A stretch of 63,459 nt of DNA, the filler included, from Choristocarpus tenellus KU-1152 (lineage: Eukaryota; Protista; Phaeophyceae), in NCBI GenBank assembly GCA_964200185.2. It is 7 parts of 7 records of this genome, joined end to end, with 100 filler letters (N's around TTAATTAATTAA, not from the genome) between each part and the next. Parts side by side here need not be neighbours in the genome. Positions count along the whole stretch, not along the records: positions 34,398 to 39,542 come from CAXNAD020011722.1; 6 more parts are not named here. One strand, given 5' to 3'. A program made the position numbers and the translations under genes. This document shows, one piece after another, positions 15,299 through 39,542 of this stretch (its first letter is position 1; each line of letters opens with the position of its first letter). Below the pieces are notes generated by a model. It saw only the letters and a program-made list of their open reading frames with translations, was not told the origin of the DNA and searched no databases.

Positions 15299-18200
15299 AT
15301 GCCTGCGAGCAAGGCTGGTTCGGTTGGCTCTTACTCTAACTCCAGCGGGAGTGTGAATGGGAGCGATGTACTTAACAAATATGGGAAAAACACTTTAAAA
15401 GTCGACATTAGGAAGGTACGCCGCAATCACACCAACCACGTAAGGCGGGAGAAAGTACTTGAGTGTATTAATTCAACTTACAGCATGGGAAGATACGATT
15501 GGTATTATTGGCCTTGAAACGTGCTTAAGTACAGACGATGTTGGTAAACGTTGATGGATTCCCCTTCCAAAGGCTGAGAAGGACCTTGCCAAGTCCAAAG
15601 GAAAGACAAAGAAGGAGCGCAAGGTAGAGGACGACAGCACATCTGTGGGGACCATGAATTCTGCTGAGGGAGAGGATATCGATAAAGGACGCGATGGAAT
15701 TGAAAGGACAGAAAGCTCCTCGAAGGATGTGGTCAATATCTCGGAGAGTCTGCAAAGGCTTACCCCAGGGGAAGTATTTGCGCGTTTTGACACAGATAAA
15801 AGCGGACTCATTGACTTCGACGAGTTTCGTACCATGCTGCCACAACTGGGTATCAATATATCCACTCCGAAGGTAAGAATGATACGACCTACCTGGTGAG
15901 AGCATTTTTCTGGAGTTTGGGCTGGACGTTTGCGACTCACTTGCCATGATCGAAGAAGTAAAGTGGTGAAAATATCACTGAACAAGCTTGAGCGTGTATG
16001 ATAAGTATCACCTGGACCACTTGCTTGCAGACGCTCTTTAAGACAGCAATGACATACCCCACATCTGGGAACAGGCGATGCGGTACTTTCGTATGTGTGA
16101 TACAGATGGGACTGGGGAGATCGACCTGGAAGAATTTAACGTGGCCCTTTTTGCTGTTGATCCCGACAATGGAAACCCTGTTGGTTTCAAACCAAACGCC
16201 CTCATATCGCCCCAAGATGCTTTTGAGGTGAGACTCGGCGCATACATTCCTTCCTCAGCATTTTCTCAAAGACCTGCTGGGTGGTAGGCAAAGATAAACA
16301 AGCTCAAAGTATCTGGAGGGGGTTGGCAGCTGTCCACCCGGGTCCATTTTTCCATGTCGCGATATTTTTTGTGATTTGGTTGCATGCGTCGGATGGATAA
16401 CGTAAGTTCATTGCTCCTGGTCAGGGCCCGAACAGACAACCTGGTGTAGATTCCCCCCCCCCCCCCCCCCCTCCCCTTATGCCACAAACCCACCCACCAC
16501 ACCCAATAATACCAAAAACTTAAAATAATAAAANNNNNNNNNNTTCCCTCCCCCCCCCCTCAGATACTTTGAGCCAACATTCCACACAAACTCGTATACT
16601 TACACTAATTATGCAATGGATAGGATATACTTTCGATGTAGTCCTTGCCAATTACTAGTATTGAATAGTATTCAACTAAAAATATTTTCAACCTGTCATA
16701 TACTCGACCTCGAGCGATAATGGAGAGCTGGTGAGGAAAGGAGAAGATTTGCCTAAGGGACAAACACCCTTGCGTAAGTCAATGCATATACTTCAGTTGG
16801 GAGAACTCTCCTCCATGAAGGGGGACCCGAACCCGATACACTCTATGCACAACATACTAGAAATAAGATAAACAAGCACCTCTGACATACATATTGCCTC
16901 CTTCCATGGCTTCCACCCTTTCCCTTTTCTGGAAGATGTTTGATGAAGACCAAAGTGGGAAAATCGATGAAGATGAGTTCTTCTTCCTACTTCAGTTCCT
17001 GGGGATGGAGGTAGGTTGTCAGGGCCAACCTCAGGCACATAGGTTTTCACAAGTTCATATTTTAGTTCCACTCCAAAGACATAGAGTAAGTACCCACTTC
17101 CCACATCTACATAGGCTGCAGAAGAATTTCAAGTGTAGGCTGCTCTCATCGGACACTCCATCGTCTGATTTGGTCAAGGCAAAAAATAGAATGCATATGA
17201 AGGAAAGTTGGAACGGTCATCATCGATGGGGGAACCAGGGTCTTCAAATAAAGAAACGGAGTAGCAGATATGACCCTCTGTGTGCACCTGCAAAGAGAAT
17301 AGTCAGGTTACCTTGGATAATGCAAAAAACTAGTGCTCAAAAAAATTACCCAAGATCAATCTCCACGTCAGCCCTCTTCTTGACTTTGGCAACTTCTACT
17401 GCCCTAGGTGAGTGAGAAGAAGCTAGAAGAGCTGTTCAACAAGTACGACCATGACAATTCTGGATACATTGAGTACAATGAATTCAAGAAGATATGGGCC
17501 AGACTTGCAAACGTAAAAAATGAGCTCGTGAGCCGAGGGGTGAAGATTCCTAAGCTCGCAACCAAGAGCATGCTGATCAAGATGCTGGAGAAGGTCCTGG
17601 ATGAAGAGGAAGATAGGTGACAATAACAACACTATGGTATCAGCATACCACATGGCCAGGGAGTATGCGAAGGGCAGAGGCTGACTCCACCTTGAATAGT
17701 CAGGACACCACAGGATGGGGAAATTTGAATAATTTTCTCAGATATGCATTGGATCTACAGTCCGTTTACCTTACAGCATTTGCTTAGGATTTTTTCCTTT
17801 CATTATACATGGGAGAGATGAAGTGTGGAGCGAAGAAGGAAATAGGTTGATCTATTGATCATTGATTAATTAAGAGGTGGCATCTTGAACTGTCTAAACT
17901 AGAGTAAAGTCGCTATTGACTTTGGTAGTGGAACCTCCCTCCTTCAAGTAGCCCCTTCATCAACCCTGCCCCAACCAGAGCGGAGACCAAAATACAGCAA
18001 TAAACACCATGTACACGGCATGATAATGAACAAGAAGTTAATTGGACCACCATCTCACAAGGCCATTGTTTAGTGGGTAAAAGAGGAAAAATGATGCCCA
18101 TACATTGAATTCCTCTCAACAATCAACAATCAGCCTAACTGTTATCCCACCTGCCACAAATGATTTCTGAGAGTAGTCCTCTCCATTTCTACTGGAGTTC

Positions 18201-21200
18201 CATTCCTACTATACCTCTATGTCAAATAGGTGCTGTTTGTGAAACATTCTTTGTTCAATTTATCCACCTCTTCTGCCAACTTCCCATCCGTTGTGATTGC
18301 TCTTTTGCCCCCACTGACTCTGTAGTTACAATAACACGCCTGATAAGGGTTATCGTATTTGCTTTTCTCGACATGTTATGCAGAGAGGAACGGGCACTAG
18401 CCGAGGCAGAGCGCTGGAGGACTTGGCAAATCCTCCTTAAGGACAAACGAAGAGCATATGAACGGGCAAAGAGGAGGAGTGCCATTGAACTCAAGGCGGC
18501 GTTTGATTCTGCAGGGTCGGTGTGGGTGTTTGGGACTGGGCCCTTTGGAGAGTTCCGTGGCAATCCACCCATGACCCTGCAACAAGGGCAACACATTTTT
18601 GACCACTACGACATTGTCAGGGTGAGGGTACACTGCTCATCATGACCGACAATTGCTGATAGAAGATGGATACCCTATTAGAGGAGAATGGAGGAGTTTG
18701 AAATCGGTTGGATTCATGTACAGTGACCTCTATCTCTATCTATGCTGTCAATGAAACAGGAGGTTGGATAAATAAAAATATGATAGCGAGGTAGTTGTGA
18801 TGTCGCTATTGGCGATGGCTTGAATGGCTAGAAATATATAGCAGTGTTTCGAAGTAGGAGTTCTTCCTCTTTCCTACCAGTAGAAATGAGTCGGTTTGCA
18901 ACTGGGATGCTAAGTTGTGGAAGGGCACAATCATGCTACCAAAAATACAAGGTTGGCACGTTTCGACCTTGCCCTGAAGACAACATTTGCCACTCTAAGT
19001 TTTGTTAATCCACAGTGCTCTTGTGCACCGAAGCTCTGAGGTGCAGTCATAGGAAGCTCACGGCAAGTCCTTGGATTTGCTTCACAGATCAGCAGATAGT
19101 AACAACAGAAAATTGCCAAGATGCCAGATGTAGATGGTAAGTACAGCATTTCCCAAGAAATTGCCTTCAGCAGTTATCCGTTTGTTTCTTTAAATTCACC
19201 CTATGTCTTACCACCCCCCTTTAAGCCCCCACTCTCTCCCCTGACCTTTTTGCCTCACCTGCCAACTGATTGCCTATGCTGTCTCATATCCGGACTTCAC
19301 CTGAAGAATATGTGGAACAATCGAATTCATCCGCCCAAAATACAAGAAGAAAAAACAACTGTCAGCAAGAGGGACAAGAAGAGGAAGGCCAAGCAGGTTG
19401 GTCAAACTTTTGAGAGCAAGGGATGAGTTGCTTCAACAAGTGGTCTACTAAAATCGAATTTGTAGATCTCAAAAATGATCTTGGCCATGCCGACTTTATC
19501 ATCTTGTTTTGTCATCCTGGTCTGCTCACCTGTAGAATGTCGTAATATCATGGAGCTAGGGGTGTGAAGGCATCAAATTTGTACTGTGGGGATACTTGGG
19601 ATATTACACACACTAATTGGAAGCTCTAGTTCTTAGTCATGAGTGAAAGTATCTTAGAGGGTACGAATTTTGCCCTGTTTGTCCATTTGGGGCTTAGCCT
19701 CCATGTTTTTTTTGTGACATTTTCCTACTCAATAATATTTCGGAGTAGGTAAAGTGTGTATGCTATGAAAAGGTGTGTCTGGAACAAGGATATTGACAAT
19801 TCCAAACAAAACACAATAGTCAAAATTTCATCCAAATCGGAACTTTAGATTTTGGTCCCCAAATGGACGCTTCCCTACCCTCTAAGATACTTTGACTGCA
19901 TATGTTGTAGGTCATTCACTAGTCAGAACCCTGGATAACCAATTTGTTTTTTGGCTACAGTACCTATGTTGTTCTTTTCATGTGTCCATTTGTTTGATGT
20001 GGTCTTGTTTTCAAGAGTTAAAGTAAACGAGAGAGATGTCCAGGTTTTGACCGTTTTGCATCTTAACTCTATTTGTATTATGTTTGTTGCAAGTTGCCCA
20101 CGTTTCTAAGGATGAAGTTCTATTTTCGTTTTTTCTTGAGATTGTTCGTATCTCTATTGTTTGAAACATTTCCAACACAATTAACAAAATATCCCATGCA
20201 CATCGGCGCAAAAATCCAATTGTGCAACTATTTTTCAGCATCGTTAAGACTTGTCAACAATCTTATTGACCCAAATGTTTGCTTTTGACTCTTAGCTAAG
20301 AGGAGGTGTCTTACGTAAGAGCAGGTGAAGCCAGTTCCTCACCTGTGATTACTCCACCTCTGCAGTTCACTAATCCTTCTCCCACATACACCTGTGCACA
20401 ATTGAACCCAACCTCCATGCTAATACGGACTAAAATGTTGTTGAAGGAGTCTCTTGCTCTCAGTGCTGAAGGTGGGGAGGAGGAGAAAGGTGAGATGGAG
20501 CAAGGAAGTACATCTCTGATATCTCGGGACACTCAAGACCCAGAGTGCAATGCTTCTCTCAGCCCCTTTGTTGGTCTGACCATTGGTCAATGTACAGCAG
20601 CACTTTGGGGGCGACGAGTGGCCTCAGTTGCTACCACTGACAGTACTGCATTCGCACTCAGCGACTTGGGAGAGGTCAGGAAATCTTCCGCCCTTTGTAA
20701 CTTTCCCTCCCACACTCAGCACATTTAGCATCCTCGATCCTCACTCTTCTTGTGCCTATCATTTCTTTTCTAGCTAGATCGACTTGGTCTCATTCTCACA
20801 CTTGACACAACTTCAAAACACATGATTTAGTGTATTGACCCTTGTAACTAGGTCGATTTCACCTCCTTTTCCACCAATGGCCAATCCTTGATGCCCACTA
20901 GTTGTTCTTTTGGGCGACTCTTACAGAAGGAGCATCCCTGCTGATCCTCATGGACAGCCTTTGAAAATATGAGTCAAAGTATCTTAGTGGGTAGAGCTGC
21001 GTCCTTTTGGGGGCCAAATCCAATGTTACGGATTTGATGTAATTTTGGCTATCGTGTTTGTTAGGAAGTGTCAATATCCTTGTTCTGGACACACGTTTTC
21101 ATAACGTTTACATTTTACCTACTCAAAAAATGTTTCGGAGTAGGAAAAATGTCATAAAAAACTGTGGGAAGCCAAGCCCCAAAACGGACAAACAGGGAAA

Positions 21201-23589
21201 AAAACGTACCCTAACCCTAAGATGCTTTCACTCATACAAAATAACTTGCTGTTTCGTATAGGCTTGCAAACAGTTGGGTTATGTGATGGGAGGATGACCG
21301 GCACATGTTCTGGGCTTTCGGACCATTTCGGCCTCTGAAATTGAACTCTTGTTTGGTATGCCGATAAGGTGATAACATTTCACACACAACCACTGCTCCA
21401 TTCCTTGCAACTGGTATGCACATCTCTGTAACGTGAGCAACAGAATTGTATATTCTTTTTGTGGTTGTTGATAAAATATAAAAGACCATGGATGTGTCCA
21501 GTGGAAGCAATCCTGTCTTTGAATATGAATGGAGTTTCCTCTGAATGCTGTGGGTCAAAGTATCTGGGGGGGAGGGGGGTGGTTGTGAGGGGGCGTCCGT
21601 TTCGGCCAAACAACGAGTGAAAGTATCTTAGAGGGTACGAGTTTTGCCCTGCTTGTCCATTTGGGGCTTGGCTTCCCTCGGGGTTTTTTATGTCATTTTC
21701 CTACTCCAAAATATTTCGAAGTAGGTAAAATGTATATGTTATGAAAAGGTGTGTCCGCAATAAGGATATTGACACTTCCTAACAAACACGATAGCAAAAA
21801 TTACATCAAAATCGCAAATTAATATACTAAAAGGAGGTGGCTCTACAATATGAATTACTTCGGCTCAACCCTTTTTTTTTTCTGAAATTTCAAATTCGAC
21901 ACGTGCGACCAAATCACACCAATAAAGTGAAAATCGAGAAAAGGGTGAAAAACGGACGCCGACACCCTCCCCCCAAGATACTTTGACCCTGTCCAAGGGC
22001 AGAGACCGTAGCTAACACTCTATATTGACCCCTTCCCTTCTTCCTTAGGTATTTGCGTGGGGAGGAAAGGATCACTGGTGGTTTGATATTACTCCTGACT
22101 CGTACTGGCAAAGGCACTGGAGGGGGGACACAACAGAGCGCAGTCGACTCCTTCTTCAGGTTTGGGAAACATCATCCAGACCACAGGATTAGGGATTTTG
22201 CAGGTTAGGGACACTTGACGCAGCTTAGACAACTTACGCTGATGCAAGGCTAGACTTTACCTCTGAACCTGCTGTTGGTTCACATGAGAGGGCTTTGTAC
22301 CTGATACACTCAGCTTAAGGTGCAGAGTCAGAAGTGGTGTAAGTGCAAATCCCACACAAATGTTCTTGTTTCATGTACATGTACTTCGATATGACTTGTT
22401 GCAAGAGAGGTACCTGAGTAATGTACCCCCAACAATGATTCTCCTCCTGTTACTTAATCCTTGCTGCTAGACCCTTCACAAGGCAGAACCGATGGAGAAA
22501 ATCGAGGAAGAACCAGAGGATGATATAGAAAAGCAGGTAAGAATATGAATGTGGAGTTTCAGCAGTGATTGATTACCCTTGCCTCATAGCTATCTTCCTA
22601 ACCTGGTGATGCCACTTTCCAGTCACACCCATCATCAGACCTGATCTCCTCATCAATCAACTTCGGCTTGCTCGTTGTCTCTTGTCAGTTTGAACTTGAA
22701 CTGTAGAAAATCTCTCTGGGAGACACTGCCTGAATTTATTATACCATGTTTGTTTGGAATACCTCGAGTAATAGTGATGAAAATACGTAGAACCCTGGTT
22801 AGGGAGGGCTATTGCATGTTCAGGTGAAATGATAAAGGCTAAGGTGAGAACAAGGGAGAGGGTTGTGTTCAGTTTTCACCCCAACAGAAACACCAGAAAA
22901 CTGGCAAGTTGTTGATTACATTATCACTGCTGCCACCGTTGCTATCACTTGATTTGTCTATGCCCATGTCGTCATTGTCACTGTCACCTATTGCATCAAT
23001 ACTCTATGAAGTTGGAGATGTAGGGATCTTAAAACGCGTTTCTTACTTCTGTTGACTTCGGAGGGATTGGTCTTAAATACAACTTCGATCACATTCCTTG
23101 TGTGATGCCTGGATGACTACTGTCTGGTTTGGAATCATTTCTACACGGAACAGCTGCATGCTTTGGCTTTGGATCATGTTGATGAAACGTATGTGAGCTT
23201 GGTGGTGTTCACCTCCGTGGTGTACACCCCCCGGAGGCATCCGAGCACAACAGTTCCATAAATATACTAGATCACGCAAACGTTGCACACAGCCTAGTGG
23301 TATGTGGATGTGTTGTACTAGTACAATTTAGTGTCATCTCAGCTTGTTTGCTTGATTAGTCAGACTGCTACGCATCATCCCTTCATTTATTAATCCACTA
23401 GAATTCACCGGACACACAGCACTTCCCATCATCATCAATAGCACCCCTTGAAAGACATCCTATGTCCGACCCTTTGCACAGATTGAAAAGCTGAAGACAT
23501 TAACCACATACTTTGGAGTGTGGAAGCCTCCGCCAACCAATCTCAGACTGGAATACATTCGTGGAGAGCTTCTTCCCAAGATAAGGCAG
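15299..23589 (+). CDS. Four-EF-hand protein with RCC1-like repeats, 3'-truncated by contig end; exons 15299-15415, 15573-15872, 16075-16227, 16936-17010, 17408-17616, 18384-18621, 19307-19396, 20447-20674, 22049-22159, 22471-22536, 23482-23589
   Basis: Ten phase-compatible GT-AG introns. EF loops DTDKSGLIDFDE, DTDGTGEIDLEE, DEDQSGKIDEDE, DHDNSGYIEYNE. RCC1-like AGSVWVFGTG and STAFALSDLGE|VFAWGG, the latter split across an intron. Confidence 0.85.
16301..16575. mobile_element. MITE family B (spans 10-N gap 16534-16543), AACA flanks
   Basis: AGCTCAAAGTATCTGG ... CCAGATACTTTGAGCC with AACA on both sides. Confidence 0.8.
19641..19898. mobile_element. MITE family A, full length, CAT flanks
   Basis: ~23-bp imperfect TIRs GAGTGAAAGTATCTTAGAGGGTA / TACCCTCTAAGATACTTTGACTG. 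Confidence 0.9.
20015..20291. mobile_element. MITE family G, diverged, inverted relative to 49466
   Basis: Start GAGTTAAAGTAAACGAGAGAGATGTCCAGGTTTTGACCG matches the reverse complement of the 49707 end; terminates TTTTGACTC. Confidence 0.6.
20971..21233. mobile_element. MITE family A, full length, inverted
   Basis: GAGTCAAAGTATCTTAGTGGGTA ... CTAAGATGCTTTCACTC; flanks ATAT/ATAC. Confidence 0.9.
21552..21989. mobile_element. MITE family C carrying a nested family A copy; TGT flanks
   Basis: GGGTCAAAGTATCT ... AGATACTTTGACCC; the right arm matches 39492-39542 in reverse complement. Confidence 0.75.
21615..21817. mobile_element. MITE family A, right-truncated, nested in family C
   Basis: Family A terminus and body up to ...AAATCGCAA, then divergence from the family sequence. 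Confidence 0.85.
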
Positions 23590-24014
23590 GTGTCTTTGAT
23601 AGGACAAGGATAATGTGGAGAAAATTGCTAGATGTGAGGGTGTCCGGATTGGGGAACATCGAGTTGTATGTATGCATTGTGCTGAACCTGAACTATATCA
23701 TAGTATACATGGGGTTCTTGGATCTTATTAGCACTAATTTTTCTGCACACACACCACAATAAACCACACGCAATGTGTAAGGCGTCTTCTGATTTACTCT
23801 TTTCCACAATCTGTGAGATGATGTTTTCAAAATTTGTGTTGGAAGATGTTGAACATCTGAGTTACCTCAAACGCCGATCCTTGATAGACGGTCTTTCTTG
23901 TGTACTCACAGTGACAAGAAGTGCCTCATACCATCTAATAAAAGTTCGCTGTAGGTGAATAATGCACCAATGAGTAGTACATACCAAACAGTAGCAGGTA
24001 GATGAGAAGAGTTA

Positions 24015-24224
24015 GGAGCGTAAAAGACACATATCATCATTCCCAAGATACTTCTAAGTAGGATTGATCTATGTGAAATGGTACATGGGAACAGAGAAAT
24101 GGCTACGTATATCTACCTTCGGAGCGTAAAAGACACATATCATCCTTCCCAAGATACTTCAAAGTAGGACTGATCTATGAGAAATGGTACATGGGAACAG
24201 AGAAACAGCTAGGTATATCTACCT
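24015..24224. repeat. Tandem duplication, 106-bp unit x2
   Basis: GGAGCGTAAAAGACACATATCATC... begins at 24015 and 24121. Confidence 0.9.
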
Positions 24225-24474
24225 CTGAGTGGTAACATCGTTCAGGAGGAAAGGGAGGCTGCAGGGTCAACACAATCCGTTGGTTCAATGTGATACATTG
24301 AATATCTTTACTGGTGAAATGTTAATTTTCAAACCATACCCCCCTACCCCACTATTTTCTTACAGTTATCATTACAGCCATTGCTGACTGTACTGGTCTG
24401 ATCATAGGACGGAGGCATAAGTGGAAATAGCCCAGGGTGGAGGAAAACACTTTTCAGTTATATTCCTCAAAGTA

Positions 24475-24545
24475 GAGCCAAAGTATCTGGGGGGGGGGTG
24501 GTGGATGTCCATTTGGGGCCAATTTTTTCATGTCGCGATTTTTGG
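24475..24545. mobile_element. MITE family B end, truncated by contig end
   Basis: GAGCCAAAGTATCTGGGGGG...GTCCATTTGGGGCC. Confidence 0.8.
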
Positions 24546-24645
24546 NNNNNNNNNNNNNNNNNNNNNNNNNNNNNNNNNNNNNNNNNNNNTTAATTAATTA
24601 ANNNNNNNNNNNNNNNNNNNNNNNNNNNNNNNNNNNNNNNNNNNN
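24546..24645. other. Artificial contig-join linker
   Basis: Same 100-nt spacer. Confidence 0.97.
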
Positions 24646-24655
24646 GTGTTGTCAT

Positions 24656-24836
24656 CGTCGAAATTATCTTCGGGGTGGGGGTGGCGGTTGTCCGTTTGGG
24701 ACCGATTTTTTCATCTTGCGATTTTTTGGTGATTTGGTTGCATACGTCAGATGGATAATATAAGTGCACATTTCCTGTTATGAGTCACATGGACACCCTG
24801 ATGCAGACCCCCTCCCCCCACCAGATACTTTGGGTC
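24656..24836. mobile_element. MITE family B, TCAT flanks
   Basis: Degenerate left TIR, intact right TIR CCAGATACTTTGGGTC, shared body. Confidence 0.8.
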
Positions 24837-25169
24837 TCATATTCACTCATGAAATAATTGTGATTATCACAGATTTCCTGGTGTCACATCGATTTATGCA
24901 CACAACCTAAATCTAACTTAACATGGTAAAATCTTACTCCAAAATATGCACTCATAGAAGTCAAGGGCATCAAACTAGAGCTTTAAATATCTTGACCACT
25001 GAAATTACAAATCTAGTGTGTGATTGAAAAAAATGATTTGACTGCGTGGCCTCTAAATTTTTTAACCAAGGGTACACTTAGGAAAGATGGTGACACCAAA
25101 CAAAGGGGCACAAATCCTTAATATTCTAATCAACCATGCATGGATCTATAATCTCAAGGATTTGCTGAC

Positions 25170-26693
25170 CTGATGGTAAAGTACATCCCCAAGAAGTTGA
25201 AGAGGCCGCATCCCATCATGAGTAGAATATCTCGCAAGCCCCCAGAGTATGTAGAAATTGATGTGAGCATGAGGGCCACCGATGAAATAGCAAGTGACAC
25301 CATTTGATGCCAGAAAATCATTGTTGTGACCCTTGGATTCTCCTCTACACCGCTTTTGGGGATACTGGGCACATTGTTGATGAATGTACCAAGCACACCG
25401 AGAAGGATTGCAACCGCTCGTCCTTCCCAGGGGTCATCCTCATCGCCAGCTGTCACATACCTCGCCGCAGGATAATACGCACAACACAAGTTTGGCCTTA
25501 CAATGATCAAAATCCCCATGGCAGAGATCACGGCCCCAATGATGTTGTCTCTGTGAAACCATTGCCCCCGTGAGCCTGATGTCAAGATAGCCGAGAAGGT
25601 GCAATATGTGAACTGCAGAGAAACCTGTACCGTCCAGTTTTTCGATCAAGGGTGCATCCATGCCATTAGTGCGCTGGGGGCTACGCCGAGAGAGCATAAT
25701 GGCAGTTATGCCTGCAGAGCACATCGAGGAATTTCAGTACTGGGTAGAACACAGAAAGCAGCCCCTCTTTGAAAAATAACCATGCGTATACACACCACGG
25801 TTGGAAGAGAAAGTAGTCTCAAGGAGAAGTACAATGCTGTTGAGGAGGCGACGCCTTTGCATCCCTGGAGGAGCGTGCTAGGCCAGAAGCTGTGTGATAG
25901 GAGTTTGATGCGCATGCAACATAAGTAGAAAGGAGAAAATTAGTCACTAGGCATCCATTTTGATCAAGAAAAATCACACATAGTTCAAACGAACTTCCCT
26001 AATGTATCATTGATTGTTGTGGGCGACTAGTGTTGTAGATCGTCATCGTAGCATTCTTGCCAAATGTAGTACGGCTCTGGTTTTGACGAAGGCATGAATA
26101 TTAACGAAATATATATCCACTTGGCAAACCTGGTTTGAGCTCAGGTTCACACACAAAATTTCGCACCTGGGTGAAGGAAGGAGACCACTTAAACAGGCCT
26201 GTCTTCTCCTGCGATTGCTCACGACAGCAGTGGCCAGTGCAAGCAACACCTGGCTAACACTACTACCAAACCCTATCATAAACATATCCTCATTCATAGA
26301 CACAAGTTTGACCATGAGGAAGAAGATGCTGAACGAAAACGATGCCAAGGAAGTATTCGCAAAGTTGGTGGCACAACGCGCTAGAAGGTCGAAATAGTTG
26401 TCTGAGACTAATTCATTCCCACGTGTTGGCGTAATCCCACACAGTTCGCTATTCAATCTGTCCTGGATCGTAACATGGGACCCCCCCTCTAATCCATAGT
26501 ATGAAGTTGTATGCTTCCCATCCTCTATGTTTTCCTCATCCGTTGGTGTGATATGTCCAGATCGATGCGATATGGTTAAGATCATCCCCTGTATTGCTGT
26601 AGAGAGCCATGTGAGTACGACTGAACTCTGGGACTGAGTGTTAATCGGTTCATTCTGTAGGTTTCGGTCATGGTTGGTACAATCCTTCCGCAT
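25170..26693 (-). CDS. EamA/DMT-type membrane transporter, 3'-truncated; exons 26693-26167, 25889-25796, 25624-25170
   Basis: Phase-compatible GT-AG junctions give ALYFSLRLLSLPTV|VSLQFTYCTFSAIL...IIGAVISAMGILIIVRP, an EamA-like pattern; multiple TM segments; start codon less certain. Confidence 0.7.
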
Positions 26694-28099
26694 CGATCCG
26701 AAACACTAGTTCAGTTGATGTCCTGTATAAATTTTGGAGGGTGTCATTCAGATTCAGATATGTTGAAAATTGTTGAGTCCTTTTTCTTGTTTTAAGTATG
26801 AATTTTCATTGAAAAGTAGATATTTCTTCTATATTTCTATTGTTGTTTGAGTATAACAATATTGTATTTTGTGAGATGTCACCTTGAAAAATTTATATTT
26901 GGTTTCAATATTGTGACCTACCTGCCATCATAATACTCAACATATATATGTTCTGTATCAAAGTAATCACATCATATAGATATGTGTGTTTCAACTCCAC
27001 GAAATATTACTTCATGTTAATATTTCGTCTGATTCTTACTATGATTATTATTCTGATCTACATCTGATTTGTATCTGATGTATCTTCCTCACCTACCTTT
27101 TCCTGCTGTTACATTATATTCTTGAATAAATAATCTGTTTATGTAGAATGTTCCTATATATTAGGGATGATCAGAACTATCACAGATAACATGTAAGAAG
27201 TGAGAGATGGGGTTTATGCATACTCTGTGTACGTTGAGAGCTTCAAGGTAGGATGTTGTTCAATCTCTACTCTACTATGATTTGTTGTGGCCAGTTAGAA
27301 CAGACACACAATATCTGGATTTACTGGTTTGAATCCATCATTAATAGGGTTACCACAAGGTGGTCATGTGTCTTACCCACACCACATCACCTTCACTGAC
27401 CTCAATCCCAAAAGGCTTGCGCGCGCAAATGCATATGAATGCACACATTAACTATGTCGTTGTGGGGAGATGTCAAACATGGGACGTGTTCCTGACATTA
27501 CCCCCTCTATTATGGATCCTATTTGACAAGAACAGAAAACTGGCTAGCCATCACTTCATGTGGAACAGTTTCTTCATTAAGAGAAAATCATAGTGGTTGA
27601 ATCTACTAGGGGATTTCTTGGTTTAAAAAGGAGAAAAAAAGGTGGGGGGAAGTGGTGATCGGTCCTCCTACATCAAACTCTAGTTCAACGTAGAAATCCT
27701 GTGTTAACTGGTGGAAGTGTAGTGAGGAAAATGGCGCGAACCAGTCCTTCGCCTACGTGCGCCCAAGGATTTGAGTGGATAGAGGTCGGTACCACTACAA
27801 CTTTGGCATCATTTAGTCATCAATTAGGAATGCTCCAGGGATAGTGTTCGAAAAAACCTGGTCTAAAAATGCCAACCAAAGCGGTTGGAAAGTCAGAAAA
27901 AATGACCCTTCTTAGTGTATTTTTAATGTTCAGAAAAATATGCAATCTTCTCACAGGTAGGACCAACCTGTGTAAGTGTCTCCATGTACAAGCTATGTTT
28001 CTACCCCACAGTCCTGAGTCATCCGATAGATACGCCCGAAATACCACCAGGACCGTGCCATGGTATGGTCTTCGAGAATTTATCAGTGTCGCTTCCACC

Positions 28100-34397: not shown

Positions 34398-34500
34398 GTG
34401 CATACAGTATTATCCTTCCTTATGGCAAGGCGGGAGATGATCATTAACACATAAACATCATTTAAAGAGTGATAGTAATCGTTTCCATCCTATCCATGAA

Positions 34501-34606
34501 GCTTCTGATTGATTTTCCAGCTCGCCACAATTAATTAGTCACTTCGACGATTGATTTCCCAGCTCACCACGATTAATTAGTTGCTTCGACGATTGATTCC
34601 CAGCTA
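34501..34606. repeat. ~41-bp tandem repeat x2.5
   Basis: GATTGATTT(T/C)CCAGCTC..CAC.ATTAATTAGT repeated. Confidence 0.85.
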
Positions 34607-35144
34607 ACCCTAACGCTAATTACTACAAAACCGATATTATACCTATTGATTCTGTGCCGCTTTTTTAGGGCATACCCATGGGTGAACAAAATCGGGGTAG
34701 GTACTGTAGATAGAATAATGTCTTTTATATTTACAACTTTTACTTTTACATGGTTGTTCCGATATTTAATTGACCTTTCGTTTGTTTTTCCCCTGACATA
34801 TCTGGAAATGTCAAGGTCAAATTTTTTCATATATTTAGTATGTATACAATATGTATCGGAAATAAAATCGTCTAAGGACTTTTTTTTTTAATCTTGTGGG
34901 ATTGAAATATGCATCAGTCCCCTTTAACATTTTCCAGATGTTTCGGGGAAAGTACAAAACCATCATTCACAATCCGTAACTGTCACATTCTTGGGATGTT
35001 TCCTTCACTCCTCGCCCGCTTCTACAGGGGCTGAGGTTAGAACAGCCGATTTCAAAAATTGAGGATGGAGCTTTTCATTGCGGATGGGCTTGACCCAAAA
35101 TTGACTGGGATAAAGTGTCGATATGATTTTTTTTTAAATGACCA

Positions 35145-35318
35145 GTTAACATGGCATTAGACATAATAACCCGTCTTCAGGCAGAAGTGCATGTGGGTAA
35201 ACTCAGTATGACCTTGTGAAGACGCTATGTCTTACCCTGGGAGATCTCTCATTATGTTCTACACTTAGAGCTAGAGATATAGTGATATATCTTAATGTAA
35301 TAGGAGAAGTCAGCAGAG
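35145..35318 (+). mobile_element. Group II (IIC-like) intron ribozyme fragment: 3' part of DI, DII, start of DIII
   Basis: GAAGACGCTATGTCTTACCCTGGGAGATCTC ... GAGAAGTCAGCAGAG matches the DI/DII/DIII junction pattern of bacterial IIC introns. A perfect 7-bp hairpin AGATATA-GTGA-TATATCT (35275-35292) carries a GNRA loop inside DII. Confidence 0.75.
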
Positions 35319-35452
35319 TGCATAAGCTCATTCGGAAATTTCTACAAGCAGGCGTGATGCATAATGGAGTCTGTATACGCAAAGGGCAAGGCACTGCCCA
35401 GGGCAGTCCGCTTTCGCCTATACTCTCTAACATTATGCTTCATGAACTGGAT
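35315..35452 (+). pseudogene. Group II intron reverse transcriptase/maturase fragment
   Basis: RVHKLIRKFLQAGVMHNGVCIRKGQGTAQGSPLSPILSNIMLHELD fits the GxPQGxPLSPxLxNIxLxxLD motif; ends before YADD. Confidence 0.9.
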
Positions 35453-35712
35453 TAAGACAAAAGAAGCAACAAACACAGCATTTAGTAGATATAAATAGCC
35501 TTAGAGAAGACAAGAGAGTAACTGTAGGTATACATGAAGTGTTTGGCCAAATATATAAAGATATTGGCTATGATAAAGTATTCAAAAATCCAGCAAGGCA
35601 AGTTGCAGCCAGTAAGAAACTGTTTAACATAGTAATGGCACGTTTAGCCAATCCCTCCTCCAAAAGGTCTTCTGTTTTAGAATTAGAGAAAAAAATTGGT
35701 ACCAGCTTACGT
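35453..35712 (+). pseudogene. IS1634-like (IS4-related DDE) transposase N-terminal fragment
   Basis: Stop-free frame LVDINSLREDKRVTVGIHEVFGQIYKDIGYDKVF...LFNIVMARLANPSSKRSSVLELEKKIG resembles the GIHEVYG / VMARIANPxSK pattern I recall for IS1634 transposases. Confidence 0.7.
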
Positions 35713-36227
35713 TGGTCATTTAAAAAAAAATCATATCGACACTTTATCCCAGTCAATTTGGGGTCAAGCCCATCCTCAATGAAAAGCTTCATCCTCAATT
35801 TTTGAAATCGGCTGTTTTAGGAGGTATAGGAGCAATGTAGTGAAAACATTAGAATTACAAACCTCTAAGAGAGTGTTGGAGTATAGTTGACATAGAAATA
35901 GCAAATGATTTTTGGGAAAATTTTTACATTCACGACAATTAATTGTTACTGCGACAGGAGTCGTTGTGATATTGGCATGACGTTTCCCCTGATACATGTA
36001 CGAAATGTCAGAGAGCATAATAACATACATACACGTATAGTCGTTTACTATTTCATTATATACCTACATTGTAAATTGAAGGTATGATAATAATATAATA
36101 AATAGTATGGGGGTGAGGGGTGGAACGATATTGTAGGAAAGGGGTTGTAAAGTCCTGTTTGAGAGAGTGTCTGTCACTGTACAAGTGACTCGCTCGAGAC
36201 CCACCCGATGACTTTTTGTGCACCATA

Positions 36228-36372
36228 GTGTACACAAAATTGATAAACCCCCTTTCCACACGCAGAGTGAAACTACAATTAATGAAAGTCTCTCTTGGCG
36301 TTGTACAGAATGTTTTATTTTTCATTTCTCGGGATCCTTCTTAAAACGCAACCTTACCTACTTCTCAATTAC
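36228..36372 (+). repeat. Dispersed repeat family D
   Basis: GTACACAAAATTGATAAACCCCCTTTCCACAC...GGGATCCTT...AAAACGCAACC. Confidence 0.65.
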
Positions 36373-37265
36373 TTTAATGAGTGGGTGCCCATGATAATTA
36401 AAATCAAATACCAATCGCTTCATGTCTAGCGATTGCTGTTACTGTTATACTAGAAGTAGTAGACATATTTTTGTGAAGCGAAGTTGAGGTTTTCAAATTG
36501 TTCAGGAAGACTTAGTTTTTAGTAGGATGCAGTGCTTTTTGGGTTTTGCATGGATTTTTAGATCGTAAGCACCATCAACAACGGCTGTTCTTCACTCACT
36601 GTACGTAAAATGAACTTCTTTCGAAGAACTCCAGTTGTACACTAGACACAATAGGGCTGCTTGCCCTTGTTCAGATAGTCAAGATGGAGTCCCTGGTTGC
36701 CTGTAAGTGAGAGAAGTTCTAATATTTTCATGGGCGTAGACAGATAATTGATTTGATTGGTATTGGAAGTAGTAGCAAGGAAGCATCGATCAGATCTGTC
36801 TTCTTGCGTCTTGTGTGTAAGAAATAACATCACAAACATTCCACAACTCTTCTACTGCATTAGTCCTCCTCCTCCTGTATAATACACTGTTGTTACAGTA
36901 AGTAGTATAAATATTATTAGTACAGTTTTTTTTTTTCCATTATTACCCTGTTGTGCTTGGATAAATAACCTGTGACGACCATGTGCCACAGGAGTAGGAG
37001 AAAACAGCGAAAAGAGAACGAGATGCAGGGCGTCCATACTGTCGGTTACAAAATGCCAACAACTATATGCGTGTATATTATTATGCCCTCTGACGTATCA
37101 TGATACAAAAGTGTAAGACACACCACAACCCTGATACCAATGTCATTGTCTCTCTGTCCTTTGCACACAAATAATATCACGTACCCATCGCACCTCACAC
37201 ACTCGATCATTGCATTTATCTCGTATCGACCATACGCATGCATGCCACAAGCGAGTTTGACCATC

Positions 37266-37448
37266 AACAGCCGATTTCAAAAATTGAGGATGGAGCTTTT
37301 CATTGAGGATGGGCTTGACCCAAAATTGACTGGGATAAAGTGTCGATATGTTTTTTTATTAAAATGACAGTACAAAAAAAAACTTATCGACACTTTCTCC
37401 CAGTCAATTTTGGGTCAAGCCCATCCTCAATTTTTGAAATCGGCTGTT
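37266..37448. mobile_element. Family E element without cargo (183-bp foldback)
   Basis: Same arms as 35041-35816 joined by a short AT-rich centre; the right arm lacks one internal ATTGAGGATGG-containing unit; flanks CATC/CATT. Confidence 0.9.
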
Positions 37449-39491
37449 CATTCCTGGAGGGTTCAACTTTTCCCTTGTGTATTAAATCCTTTTTATCAAG
37501 ATCTTGGACTGTGTGGTGCTGTGAATTGAAACGGTTCAGTTGAGTCGATCGGGTTCAACTAAATTTTTTTGATTAGTCCACCATTCCCTTCAAAATTTCC
37601 TTGTAATAATGCTTCACTCCAATTGAGTACACAGGATTGCTACGAGTGCATATATTATGATGTAATCGCAAATCCTTTCGATTCACAGCACTATGATTCA
37701 GTCTACTATGGAGTCACAGCAATGCTCACCCGAAGAAGAGTAGACAAACTATTCATAATAGTACCTCTTCCTACTGTTGTTGTCGTACACTGCTTTTTAC
37801 CACGCATACAATTGAAAATAACCTGGTGCTGCATAGGCAGGGAAGGGTTCACAGCATGTAGCAAGCAGGCCATCAACCATCAAATAATAACACTTTACGA
37901 GGAGGCCACCTACACTCGAAAGACATCAAAAAATTCACAGGGCCAATTAATACAAAATGTTGGACTGAGTGACTCTTGCTTGACTGTGGCACAGCAGTGC
38001 ATACATACATCACAAACAGGTCATCAGTGGGGTTTTTTTGCTATCCATCTTACATAAGGATAAGTGAATGAGTGCAGAAAAAGTAGTGTGAGCTATCGTT
38101 TTGTAGCAGACAATGGGGAAAACTTATCAATTAACCTTGTTCTTCATCCAATGCATACCCTTTTGACTGATGGATGTATTGCATGAAGATCTCTTCATAA
38201 GGTAGCAGATACACCCAGTCAAATACAGGGATCTCTAGGTACCAAGAATATCCAACAAATGCTGTGTCAGTAGGTCCACCGCTCAGTTAAGACATTGAGA
38301 GTCTCTCCCTGAAATTGTATCACCCACCCTTCCTGATGCAGCTACTATATTAAGTCTGTGTTGGAAGCATACTCTTGTTTGTTCAAGGAGCACCAGCATG
38401 CAGTAAGAGCAGGCCGATAGGACACACTCATCAAGGCAAGAAGCAACATAACACATTTGCTACCTGAAACCATCCTAAACTCACTCCCTTCTCAGAAGTA
38501 CATCGAAAACTACACTCCATTTCCCTTTCCTGCACAATATCCTTACTGTCGTCTACAAGACAGTCAAAGTGAGCACACACTACATACAGCCAAGAAACTA
38601 CCGTTTGGACCCTTCCCCCTCCCTTCCCCCATTTCCTAAAAAACTACAAAGAAGTAGGGCTGAACAAGAGCACAGAGGAGCAAAAGCAAAATCCAAATGT
38701 ACCCAACATTCCTGACTGAATCCACCTCCCTTTTTCTATCTGAATGGCCCAGCAATCACTCCTCAAACACACACACAGCACTGTTGCACGTTCTGGTGTG
38801 CACAAGGGATCAACGCTGTCTTGACATGCCTGCCTACTTCTGGGAAAAATGGGAAAAATGTGCAGCACTTCCTTGGACTCCAATCCCCCATAGCTCAATA
38901 CATTCTCAACTTTCAGTTCCTACCCCCATTATTCCCTCATGCCTCTCCTTACGCCTTGGAATAAGTCTTACCATCCCCAAACTCTTCTGTCCAGGCCTGT
39001 TGGTATATGTCCATGATAGGGGGGGTAGGGAGGCGGGGAGGCAGGGTATGGAGATGCAGCAATGGATAGATACACATAGCTCAGATGGGGATGGAAACAG
39101 GTGGTTCAATACATGTATCCAAAAACTGATGTGTACAGTTATGCACTGGCACACAAAGCAAATAAAGATAGGACACGCGCTAGACACAGTAACTGTTCTG
39201 GACTTAGTGGGTGCAACAATAGAGTTGTACCGATACATACAGGTTCAAGAGTCCATGACCAGAACCATGATGAGACACTACAGAGGAGTTAAAAATAGGA
39301 CCTTTTTTGGTGGACCATGGAGAAAATCTGGGAATTTCCTGATTTTTTCTCAGGTGCAAAAATTGGGGGCAGGTGGAGCAGAATGACATGGCAGTATGAG
39401 CAATTAGGCACACAACGTCACATCTTCATACATAGCCATATTGTACAAAAATCTACACAGAAAACCCCGATGAATTGACTACCTGAGACCA

Positions 39492-39542
39492 GGGTCAAAT
39501 TATCTTGGGGGGGGGTGTCGGCGTCCGTTTTTCACCCTTTTT
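39492..39542. mobile_element. MITE family C end, truncated by contig end
   Basis: GGGTCAAATTATCTTGGGG...GTGTCGGCGTCCGTTTTTCACCCTTTT. Confidence 0.8.

Follow-up and report, generated by a model that had tools for sequence, protein, structure and literature searches.

Non-functional fragments of intracellular bacteria are known in the DNA of eukaryotic hosts, for example as nuclear insertions of Wolbachia in insects and nematodes, and organelle DNA is likewise inserted at repaired breaks. Two other groups of described systems are close to the locus reported here, namely Pack-type transposons (Pack-MULEs, Pack-CACTA, and Tgm-Express), which carry fragments of host genes, and foldback elements or palindromic miniature inverted-repeat transposable elements (MITEs), which act as fragile sites. 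Here, we analyzed a stretch of 63,459 nucleotides from Choristocarpus tenellus KU-1152 (assembly GCA_964200185.2), hereafter the window, in which the piece at 34398-39542 (CAXNAD020011722.1) contains a MITE at 35041-35816 with 568 bp of bacterial mobile-element sequence between its arms. We consider this locus to be, more likely than not, an ordinary member of an abundant foldback MITE family of the host, a single copy of which took up 568 bp of endosymbiont DNA at its axis through break repair.

The locus is comparable to Wolbachia-type transfers in that the samples still contain donor-like sequence, mobile elements abound in the fragments, the ends are arbitrary, and there is little or no microhomology. 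It differs from them in the tiny size of the insert (568 bp), in a donor that resembles Rickettsiaceae or Megaira, and in the site, which is the axis of a palindromic MITE, and its nuclear location is presumed. Like the Pack elements, it has terminal inverted repeats (TIRs) and a target site duplication (TSD) around foreign same-strand fragments from more than one source, but those elements are found in many loaded copies and are remobilized, whereas the cargo here is bacterial and single-copy, in a family that otherwise has short centers. In addition, MULEs make a TSD of 9-11 bp, compared with 4 bp here. As in fragile palindromes, nearly the whole element forms a hairpin (-77 kcal/mol for an empty copy) and it is the tip of the loop, the target of hairpin-opening nucleases, that is altered; breakage is read here from geometry, with both arms intact and no deletions or rearrangements, which sets the locus apart from fragile sites.

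An inverted repeat of 107 nt (35038-35144 and 35713-35819, 96%) encloses an interior of 568 nt. Compared base by base, the arms are 104 nt each, with the left arm at 35041-35144 on the plus strand, the right arm at 35713-35816 on the minus strand, and three mismatches (35068, 35081, and 35097). The sequence TTAG, read directly at 35037-35040 and again at 35817-35820, stands immediately outside both arms. Both arms are complete and reach the same inner base, so the cargo lies exactly on the axis of symmetry, and no deletion or rearrangement accompanies it. The cargo is read on the plus strand, and consists of a group II intron RNA remnant (35145-35324), an open fragment of a group II intron reverse transcriptase (RT; 35315-35454), and an open internal fragment of an IS1634-family transposase gene without the ends of the insertion sequence (IS; 35455-35710). 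Two bases (GT, 35711-35712) remain in the alignments where IS homology has ended and the right arm has yet to begin; they are either filler or what is left of the loop.

A second copy of the MITE, on the plus strand at 37266-37448, lies 1.4 kb downstream of the loaded one. The left arms of the two copies (37266-37363 in the second) share 97% identity. Only a short A/T-rich center parts the arms of the second copy, in which a 19-bp deletion between two short direct repeats has shortened the right arm. On folding, this empty copy forms one hairpin (-77.3 kcal/mol, z = -17), and its form indicates that a normal family member is a foldback MITE of ~190-220 bp and that the loaded copy is the same element plus 568 bases. 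The second copy is flanked by CATC and CATT, which match at three of four positions; the two copies thus give a TSD of 3 or 4 bp for the family.

We compared the piece at 34398-39542 with Logan contigs of four public runs (X1, X2, X3, and X5). Runs X1 and X2 are two samples of organism A and were treated as host libraries, and X3 is from organism B of the same study. Matching contigs numbered 5388 in X1 and 3041 in X2. The summed depth over the arm bins in X1 ranged from tens of thousands to ~160,000, compared with 18-21 on unique stretches; summed contig depth is not a copy number, and the size of the MITE family is therefore given as thousands only. There were 44 X1 contigs that lose their likeness to the window exactly before the terminus at 37266 (equivalent to 35041), which means that this terminus is family-wide. 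The arms thus belong to a family of very high copy number whose end is defined. Among the joints listed, which are the best-supported cases, the arms of sister copies are 3-28 nt apart. With TIRs, a TSD, many dispersed copies in different flanks, small size, and no coding capacity, the family has the features of MITEs, and its terminus was absent from the viral contigs searched.

The flanks contain no tRNA, and no Pfam domain was found in any of their open reading frames (ORFs) of 84-229 amino acids; a 42-bp satellite and further small inverted-repeat elements are present. The flanks look like eukaryotic non-coding DNA, and the locus is presumably nuclear. A preliminary description of this DNA, made from the sequence alone, had reported 104-bp TIRs with three mismatches, a TTAG duplication, and a 568-bp interior, all of which were reproduced by base count, and had attributed the long-TIR element to a eukaryotic host, which agrees with the high-copy family in X1 and X2 and the empty copy nearby.

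The first part of the cargo derives from a group II intron. The Rfam model group-II-D1D4-1 (RF01998) matches 35271-35350 with 37.1 bits (gathering score, 35), and the core of the match is the conserved D3/D4 linker motif. We fetched 38 viral-contig loci with this motif and built an nhmmer profile from 33 of them, which matches 35224-35324 (E 3.7e-11) and takes in a conserved block upstream of the motif that was not used in locus selection. A collinear blastn match joins 35210-35251 to one of the loci (L078). The RNA remnant therefore has independent matches from 35210 on only; it is 5'-truncated and runs from the 3' part of domain I to the linker motif. The stretch at 35315-35452 translates without a stop and matches positions 154-199 of 353 in TIGR04416, the group II RT/maturase model (E 6.5e-15). 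At 46 amino acids and 55 bits, against a model cutoff of 300, it is a fragment and not a gene, and Pfam RVT_1 also matches it (E 0.0014). Its best relative of solved structure is the GsI-IIC RT (44.4 bits), followed by LtrA (30.3) and the Roseburia and Eubacterium RTs (26), although 46 residues are too few for a phylogeny. The label of class IIC comes from this nearest solved relative of the RT piece, not from the RNA, and is accordingly a putative one.

The intact introns of the fetched set have 693-716 nt between the linker motif and the corresponding RT stretch, on the same strand, whereas the two pieces in the window overlap slightly, by about 10 nt at the joint. Since they are collinear but 10 nt rather than ~700 nt apart, the RNA and RT pieces represent one intron with an internal deletion of ~0.69 kb. 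Judged from the sequence, the cargo has two source elements and not three. Of the three abutting pieces described previously, the identities as intron RNA, RT, and IS1634 transposase hold, but not the reading as three captures; the Rfam, TIGR04416, and IS1634 matches also bear out the view of the cargo as debris of bacterial mobile DNA.

Compared with bacterial group II introns such as GsI-IIC, the window preserves the order and strand of the D3/D4 linker, the domain I block, and the RT motifs, but only as a remnant. The 5' end, domains V and VI, the RT N-terminus, the thumb, and the maturase domain are missing, and no match to Intron_gpII (D5/D6) was found within 35100-35760 at E up to 10. 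Such a remnant is predicted to be incapable of splicing or moving. The exact 22-mer of the intron motif was absent from the viral contigs searched, a blastn search of the cargo against plasmids gave only a generic RT motif (~80% over 68 bp in E. coli ltrA), and no record exists of the exact products of two window ORFs that cross the internal joints. The intron piece appears unlikely to be organellar, because its nearest RT is a bacterial IIC enzyme and it is joined to an IS of a prokaryote-only type.

The second part comes from inside an IS1634 transposase gene. The stretch at 35455-35712 is an open frame of 86 codons, which by itself matches the IS1634 model NF033559 weakly (positions 34-89, E 0.0017) and corresponds to codons ~83-168 of a transposase of 551-553 amino acids. 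A full HMMER search over 1.84 billion representative proteins gave 192 hits; the top-scoring ones are 41-54% identical, and the fragment aligns to residues ~90-170 of proteins of ~550-580 amino acids. Against the NCBIfam IS1634 model, five of these full-length hits reach 349-384 bits. A metagenome contig, L003 (2151 bp, 33% GC), carries an intact IS of 1904 bp with perfect terminal repeats of 21 nt and an ORF of 553-578 amino acids. Over 35461-35710, the window is 93.6% identical in DNA to L003 and 96.0% identical to a second contig, L113, with which it shares an identical stretch of ~140 nt. The matches to L003, L113, and the full-length proteins make the IS1634 homology secure.

The IS piece resembles IS1634-family elements at 93.6-96% DNA identity over 250 bp, with the frame kept, but covers only part of the gene. 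The aligned stretch is confined to 35461-35710, beyond which L003, L113, and a variant contig of X2 are unlike the window. The fragment lacks the DDE domain and the 21-nt terminal repeats of L003. On this evidence, it is a piece of an IS1634 member and not itself a member, and would be incapable of transposing. Of the 21 differences between the window and L003, 15 are at third codon positions, and both coding pieces of the cargo are still open. The preponderance of third-position differences implies that the divergence arose largely under selection in bacteria; together with the open frames, it implies little decay after the transfer and a young event. A tblastn search of the IS piece against plasmids gave no match, and a contig scan with the 86-residue fragment gave no relative. 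We also considered whether the MITE arms could themselves be bacterial IS ends, a possibility named at the outset as one that would overturn the earlier interpretation. This was rejected, as the 21-nt repeats of L003 are unrelated to the arms.

The donor is not among the species representatives of GTDB, given that the full L003 transposase finds only distant relatives there, at no more than ~52-57% identity and scattered over Ignavibacteriota, Bacteroidota, Rickettsiales, and others. Two contigs with hits from the representative proteins (L001 and L002) were uninformative about the donor, and cluster look-ups yielded no helpful names. On L113 (36% GC), the IS adjoins a cluster of rimK, a deacylase gene, and rimB, and the named relatives closest to the deacylase fragment (68-72% identity) come without exception from Rickettsiaceae metagenome-assembled genomes or a 'Candidatus Megaira' endosymbiont; an Atlas search with a neighbor gene on L113 gave 'Pseudomonadota' only. 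Members of Megaira are symbionts of microeukaryotes (PMC9098888). From these relatives, the donor was probably an AT-rich endosymbiont of the Rickettsiaceae or 'Candidatus Megaira' type. The AT-rich associated bacterium suggested in the preliminary description is in line with the GC content of the related IS contigs (33-36%) and with the rickettsial-looking neighbor gene.

The genes of this cluster on L113 (934-2541) are truncated and split (99, 79+206, and 94 amino acids), while they are intact on L115 (9077-11490; 305, 338, and 158 amino acids); the damage reflects either symbiont gene decay or error at low coverage (0.98). Sixteen public runs (X5-X20), which are marine, coral, macroalgal, biofilm, and sediment metagenomes, share 8-16% of the sampled words of 34900-35950. 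No contig of X5 falls on 34900-35950, and the matches of this run are limited to 31-33 nt within the second copy's arm (90-95% identity). The ~140-nt stretch common to the window and L113 could lie behind these word shares, and a Megaira-type donor fits the marine, coral, macroalgal, and biofilm runs among them.

Whether the insertion is real depends on the contigs that join the MITE to its cargo. In X1, one unbranched contig of 370 nt (35115-35484, no differences, depth 16.8) starts with the last 30 nt of the left arm, passes through all of the intron/RT part, and crosses the RT/IS joint; 30 nt of arm is k-1, the maximum of repeat sequence that a unique contig can include. At the outer ends of the arms, the X1 contigs that connect to unique flank are at depths of 21.4 and 18.1. 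An unbranched arm-to-cargo contig at the single-copy depth of the host reflects many reads, and not a single chimeric molecule or an assembler error. There is also no sequence common to the arms and the IS or the intron that could mislead an assembler.

The libraries contain other copies of the cargo's IS part. The next X1 contig begins at 35455 with depth 44, and so overlaps the 370-nt contig, which ends at 35484; this overlap indicates that other molecules share the sequence from 35455 on and differ to the left of it, that is, exactly at the RT/IS boundary. An IS variant with two synonymous changes (35610 and 35616) has a depth of 86.9 in X1 and 13.8 in X2. These other copies, ~97-98% identical and in other contexts, are thus present in the host's own libraries, and the variant contig of X2 departs from the window after 35710 and continues for 43 unlike bases, as a genuine transposase gene would. 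They represent either a low-titer symbiont with many IS copies or further integrated DNA.

In X3, a contig of 268 nt is 100% identical to 35380-35647 and crosses the RT/IS joint, whereas this run lacks the unique flanks entirely and has almost no MITE sequence. Carry-over of DNA from organism A into X3 is an unlikely source, because the MITE would have arrived in overwhelming excess. The simplest reading is that the same bacterium, with a pre-formed joint between the intron remnant and the IS, also accompanies organism B. The X3 contig agrees with the window at 35581, 35610, and 35616, and both X1 contigs there differ at one or two of these positions.

This joint bears on where the mosaic was made. 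A variant of our explanation holds that two or three bacterial fragments were ligated or template-switched together in the host during one repair event. The pieces do come from two unrelated elements and have arbitrary internal ends, the overlap of ~10 nt between the RNA and RT parts could be microhomology, and filler made of several fragments occurs at repaired breaks. However, a simple deletion in one intron would leave RNA and RT pieces collinear on one strand, which is how they lie, and the RT/IS joint at 100% identity in X3, a run without this locus, implies that it was formed in the donor. We consider assembly of the mosaic within that one repair event improbable, and somewhat favor a mosaic made in the donor, from which the host took up one contiguous piece of 568 bp. 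The earlier notion of a mosaic fused from three captures is weakened by the same joint, as the mosaic may predate the transfer.

Several points weigh against our explanation. The junction between the cargo and the right arm (35712/35713) is in no contig listed, so that of the two junctions whose reads had been put forward as a check on the element, the left is present at host single-copy depth and the right is not covered. No single record bridges the repeated arms, and k-mer contigs cannot tie the cargo to this MITE copy. Run X1 is possibly the source of the window's own data, and hence not independent. In X2, where host depth is ~7, depth is 0 in the bin at 35258-35429, which reflects either coverage drop-out or an absence polymorphism. 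The identical RT/IS joint outside the locus in X3 keeps contamination scenarios alive, no donor was found for the intron part, and the Rickettsiaceae assignment comes from one neighbor gene on one low-coverage contig, itself 96% identical to the cargo, which amounts to moderate evidence. Lastly, break-and-fill is deduced from geometry alone, with no telling microhomology at the junctions.

Some of these points would suit an artefact, in which the DNA of a bacterium in the sample became attached to the arms through assembly, a chimeric molecule, or carry-over between samples, with no nuclear insertion. The uncovered right junction, the absence of the intron/RT part from X2, and an identical RT/IS stretch in a run without the flanks all speak for it, as do the near-identical IS copies at several times host depth in the same libraries. 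Against this stand the arm-to-cargo k-mers in an unbranched contig at 16.8x, the single-copy depth of the host, and the lack of shared sequence that could confuse an assembler. Moreover, the cargo ends are arbitrary within genes yet fall exactly at the axis of the palindrome, with both arms intact. We therefore give an artefact only a small chance.

The enclosure of the cargo by TIRs and a TSD invites comparison with Pack-type capture, in which the MITE or an autonomous partner would have gained bacterial DNA through transposition-linked gap repair or template switching and could remobilize it as a recurrent vehicle. The arrangement of same-strand foreign fragments is that of Pack-MULEs (PMC1947982). 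The MITE family is highly amplified, and so is or was mobile, and several joints in which the sequence between the arms is given as not known leave room for longer interiors in other copies. Yet the intron/RT cargo forms one contig without branches, at single-copy depth (16.8 vs 18-21), which indicates that the loaded element was not amplified, and the other copies have centers of 3-28 nt among the best-supported joints listed. The TSD is equally explained by insertion of the MITE before it was loaded, and the extra IS copies run on as IS sequence and not as MITE arm, as the X2 contig does. Pack-type capture is thus unlikely, and the capture system or transfer vehicle considered in the preliminary description loses its ground to the same depth and the same short centers.

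The arms would form a stem of 104 bp, which raises the idea of a functional hairpin locus, whose transcribed stem and foreign loop would yield small RNAs against bacterial mobile elements. The empty copy (37302-37431) draws sub-threshold matches to plant microRNA precursors, which are generic long-hairpin hits, and every Rfam microRNA match is far below its gathering score. Dicing targets the MITE stem and not the 568-nt loop, eukaryotic RNA interference does not reach bacterial elements, the locus is single-copy, and no RNA run was among the public runs that match the stretch. This role is very hard to credit, and the small-RNA archive once suggested for the element fares no better, since the cargo would sit in the single-stranded loop and not in the stem. 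For the record, the Rfam matches of the empty hairpin at 37302-37431 are MIR841 (64 bits; gathering score, 200), MIR7996, MIR847, and, on both strands, the Wolbachia WsnRNA46; they are not evidence of an RNA gene.

We return to break repair at the axis of an ordinary foldback MITE, the explanation that we prefer. Extrusion is established for palindromes and inverted repeats, as is their opening or breakage (PMC3299998, PMC10164571). A near-perfect palindrome such as this one would extrude as a hairpin or cruciform, and the extruded hairpin could then be cut at its tip. End joining at repaired breaks captures filler DNA; here, it may have closed the break and taken in stray DNA of the symbiont. 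The intron/IS mosaic would already have been contiguous in decayed mobile-DNA regions of the donor, which is more likely than its assembly in the host. We infer this break-and-fill mechanism from the geometry, as the cargo is at the hairpin tip, both arms are intact, the end points are arbitrary inside genes, and a filler of 2 nt is present at one end. A foldback break site had been named before as the alternative to a Pack-type element, and is now the preferred mechanism.

The surroundings of the loaded MITE contain several other repeats. The 42-bp tandem repeat at 34507-34609 (2.5 copies, 88% matches; bins 34398-34741) belongs to a satellite with a summed depth of ~88,000-150,000 in X1 and 18,000-28,000 in X2. 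In organism B (X3), this satellite is found only in diverged versions, ~90-93% identical, which suggests that organisms A and B are related but distinct. A small inverted-repeat element of ~180 bp, just upstream of the loaded MITE, has arms of 28 nt (34781-34808 and 34931-34958, 79%). An end motif like that of this element recurs at 35983-35997, and contigs of X1 and X2 join 34747 or 34808 to 36003; the element is probably another MITE family. Further downstream, inverted repeats of 28 nt (36002-36029 and 37072-37099, 86%) lie 1042 nt apart, and X1 and X2 contigs connect 36031 to 37074, leaving out 1042 bases. This suggests a further TIR element family, other copies of which have a different or shorter interior. 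The final 150 bases of the piece (39386-39542) are very high-copy (summed depth 63,184 in X1), and many contigs diverge before 39492-39507; a new repeat family that starts at the contig end is probably the reason why the assembly stops at 39542.

A broader reading would make the MITE family a recurrent trap and carrier, in which palindromic centers break often and take up DNA of a Rickettsia-like endosymbiont, and loaded copies can still be mobilized by the transposase of the family. We regard it as very unlikely; if it were true, thousands of hairpin centers would let bacterial sequence into the host genome and shuttle it.

The insertion is most likely recent, single-copy, and without evident function, a small transfer of DNA from symbiont to host. 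The finding is a further case of the known endosymbiont-to-host transfers and filler insertions, in which the entry site is unusually clear and the donor lineage is one seldom reported as a source. It offers a datable example of the entry of bacterial DNA into a eukaryote, for which the entry point, the probable donor lineage, and the persisting donor-like copies can all be named. For the annotation of such genomes, it means that bacterial-looking stretches in host repeats should not be removed automatically as contamination, and that more than a mosaic of foreign mobile elements is needed to demonstrate a capture system.

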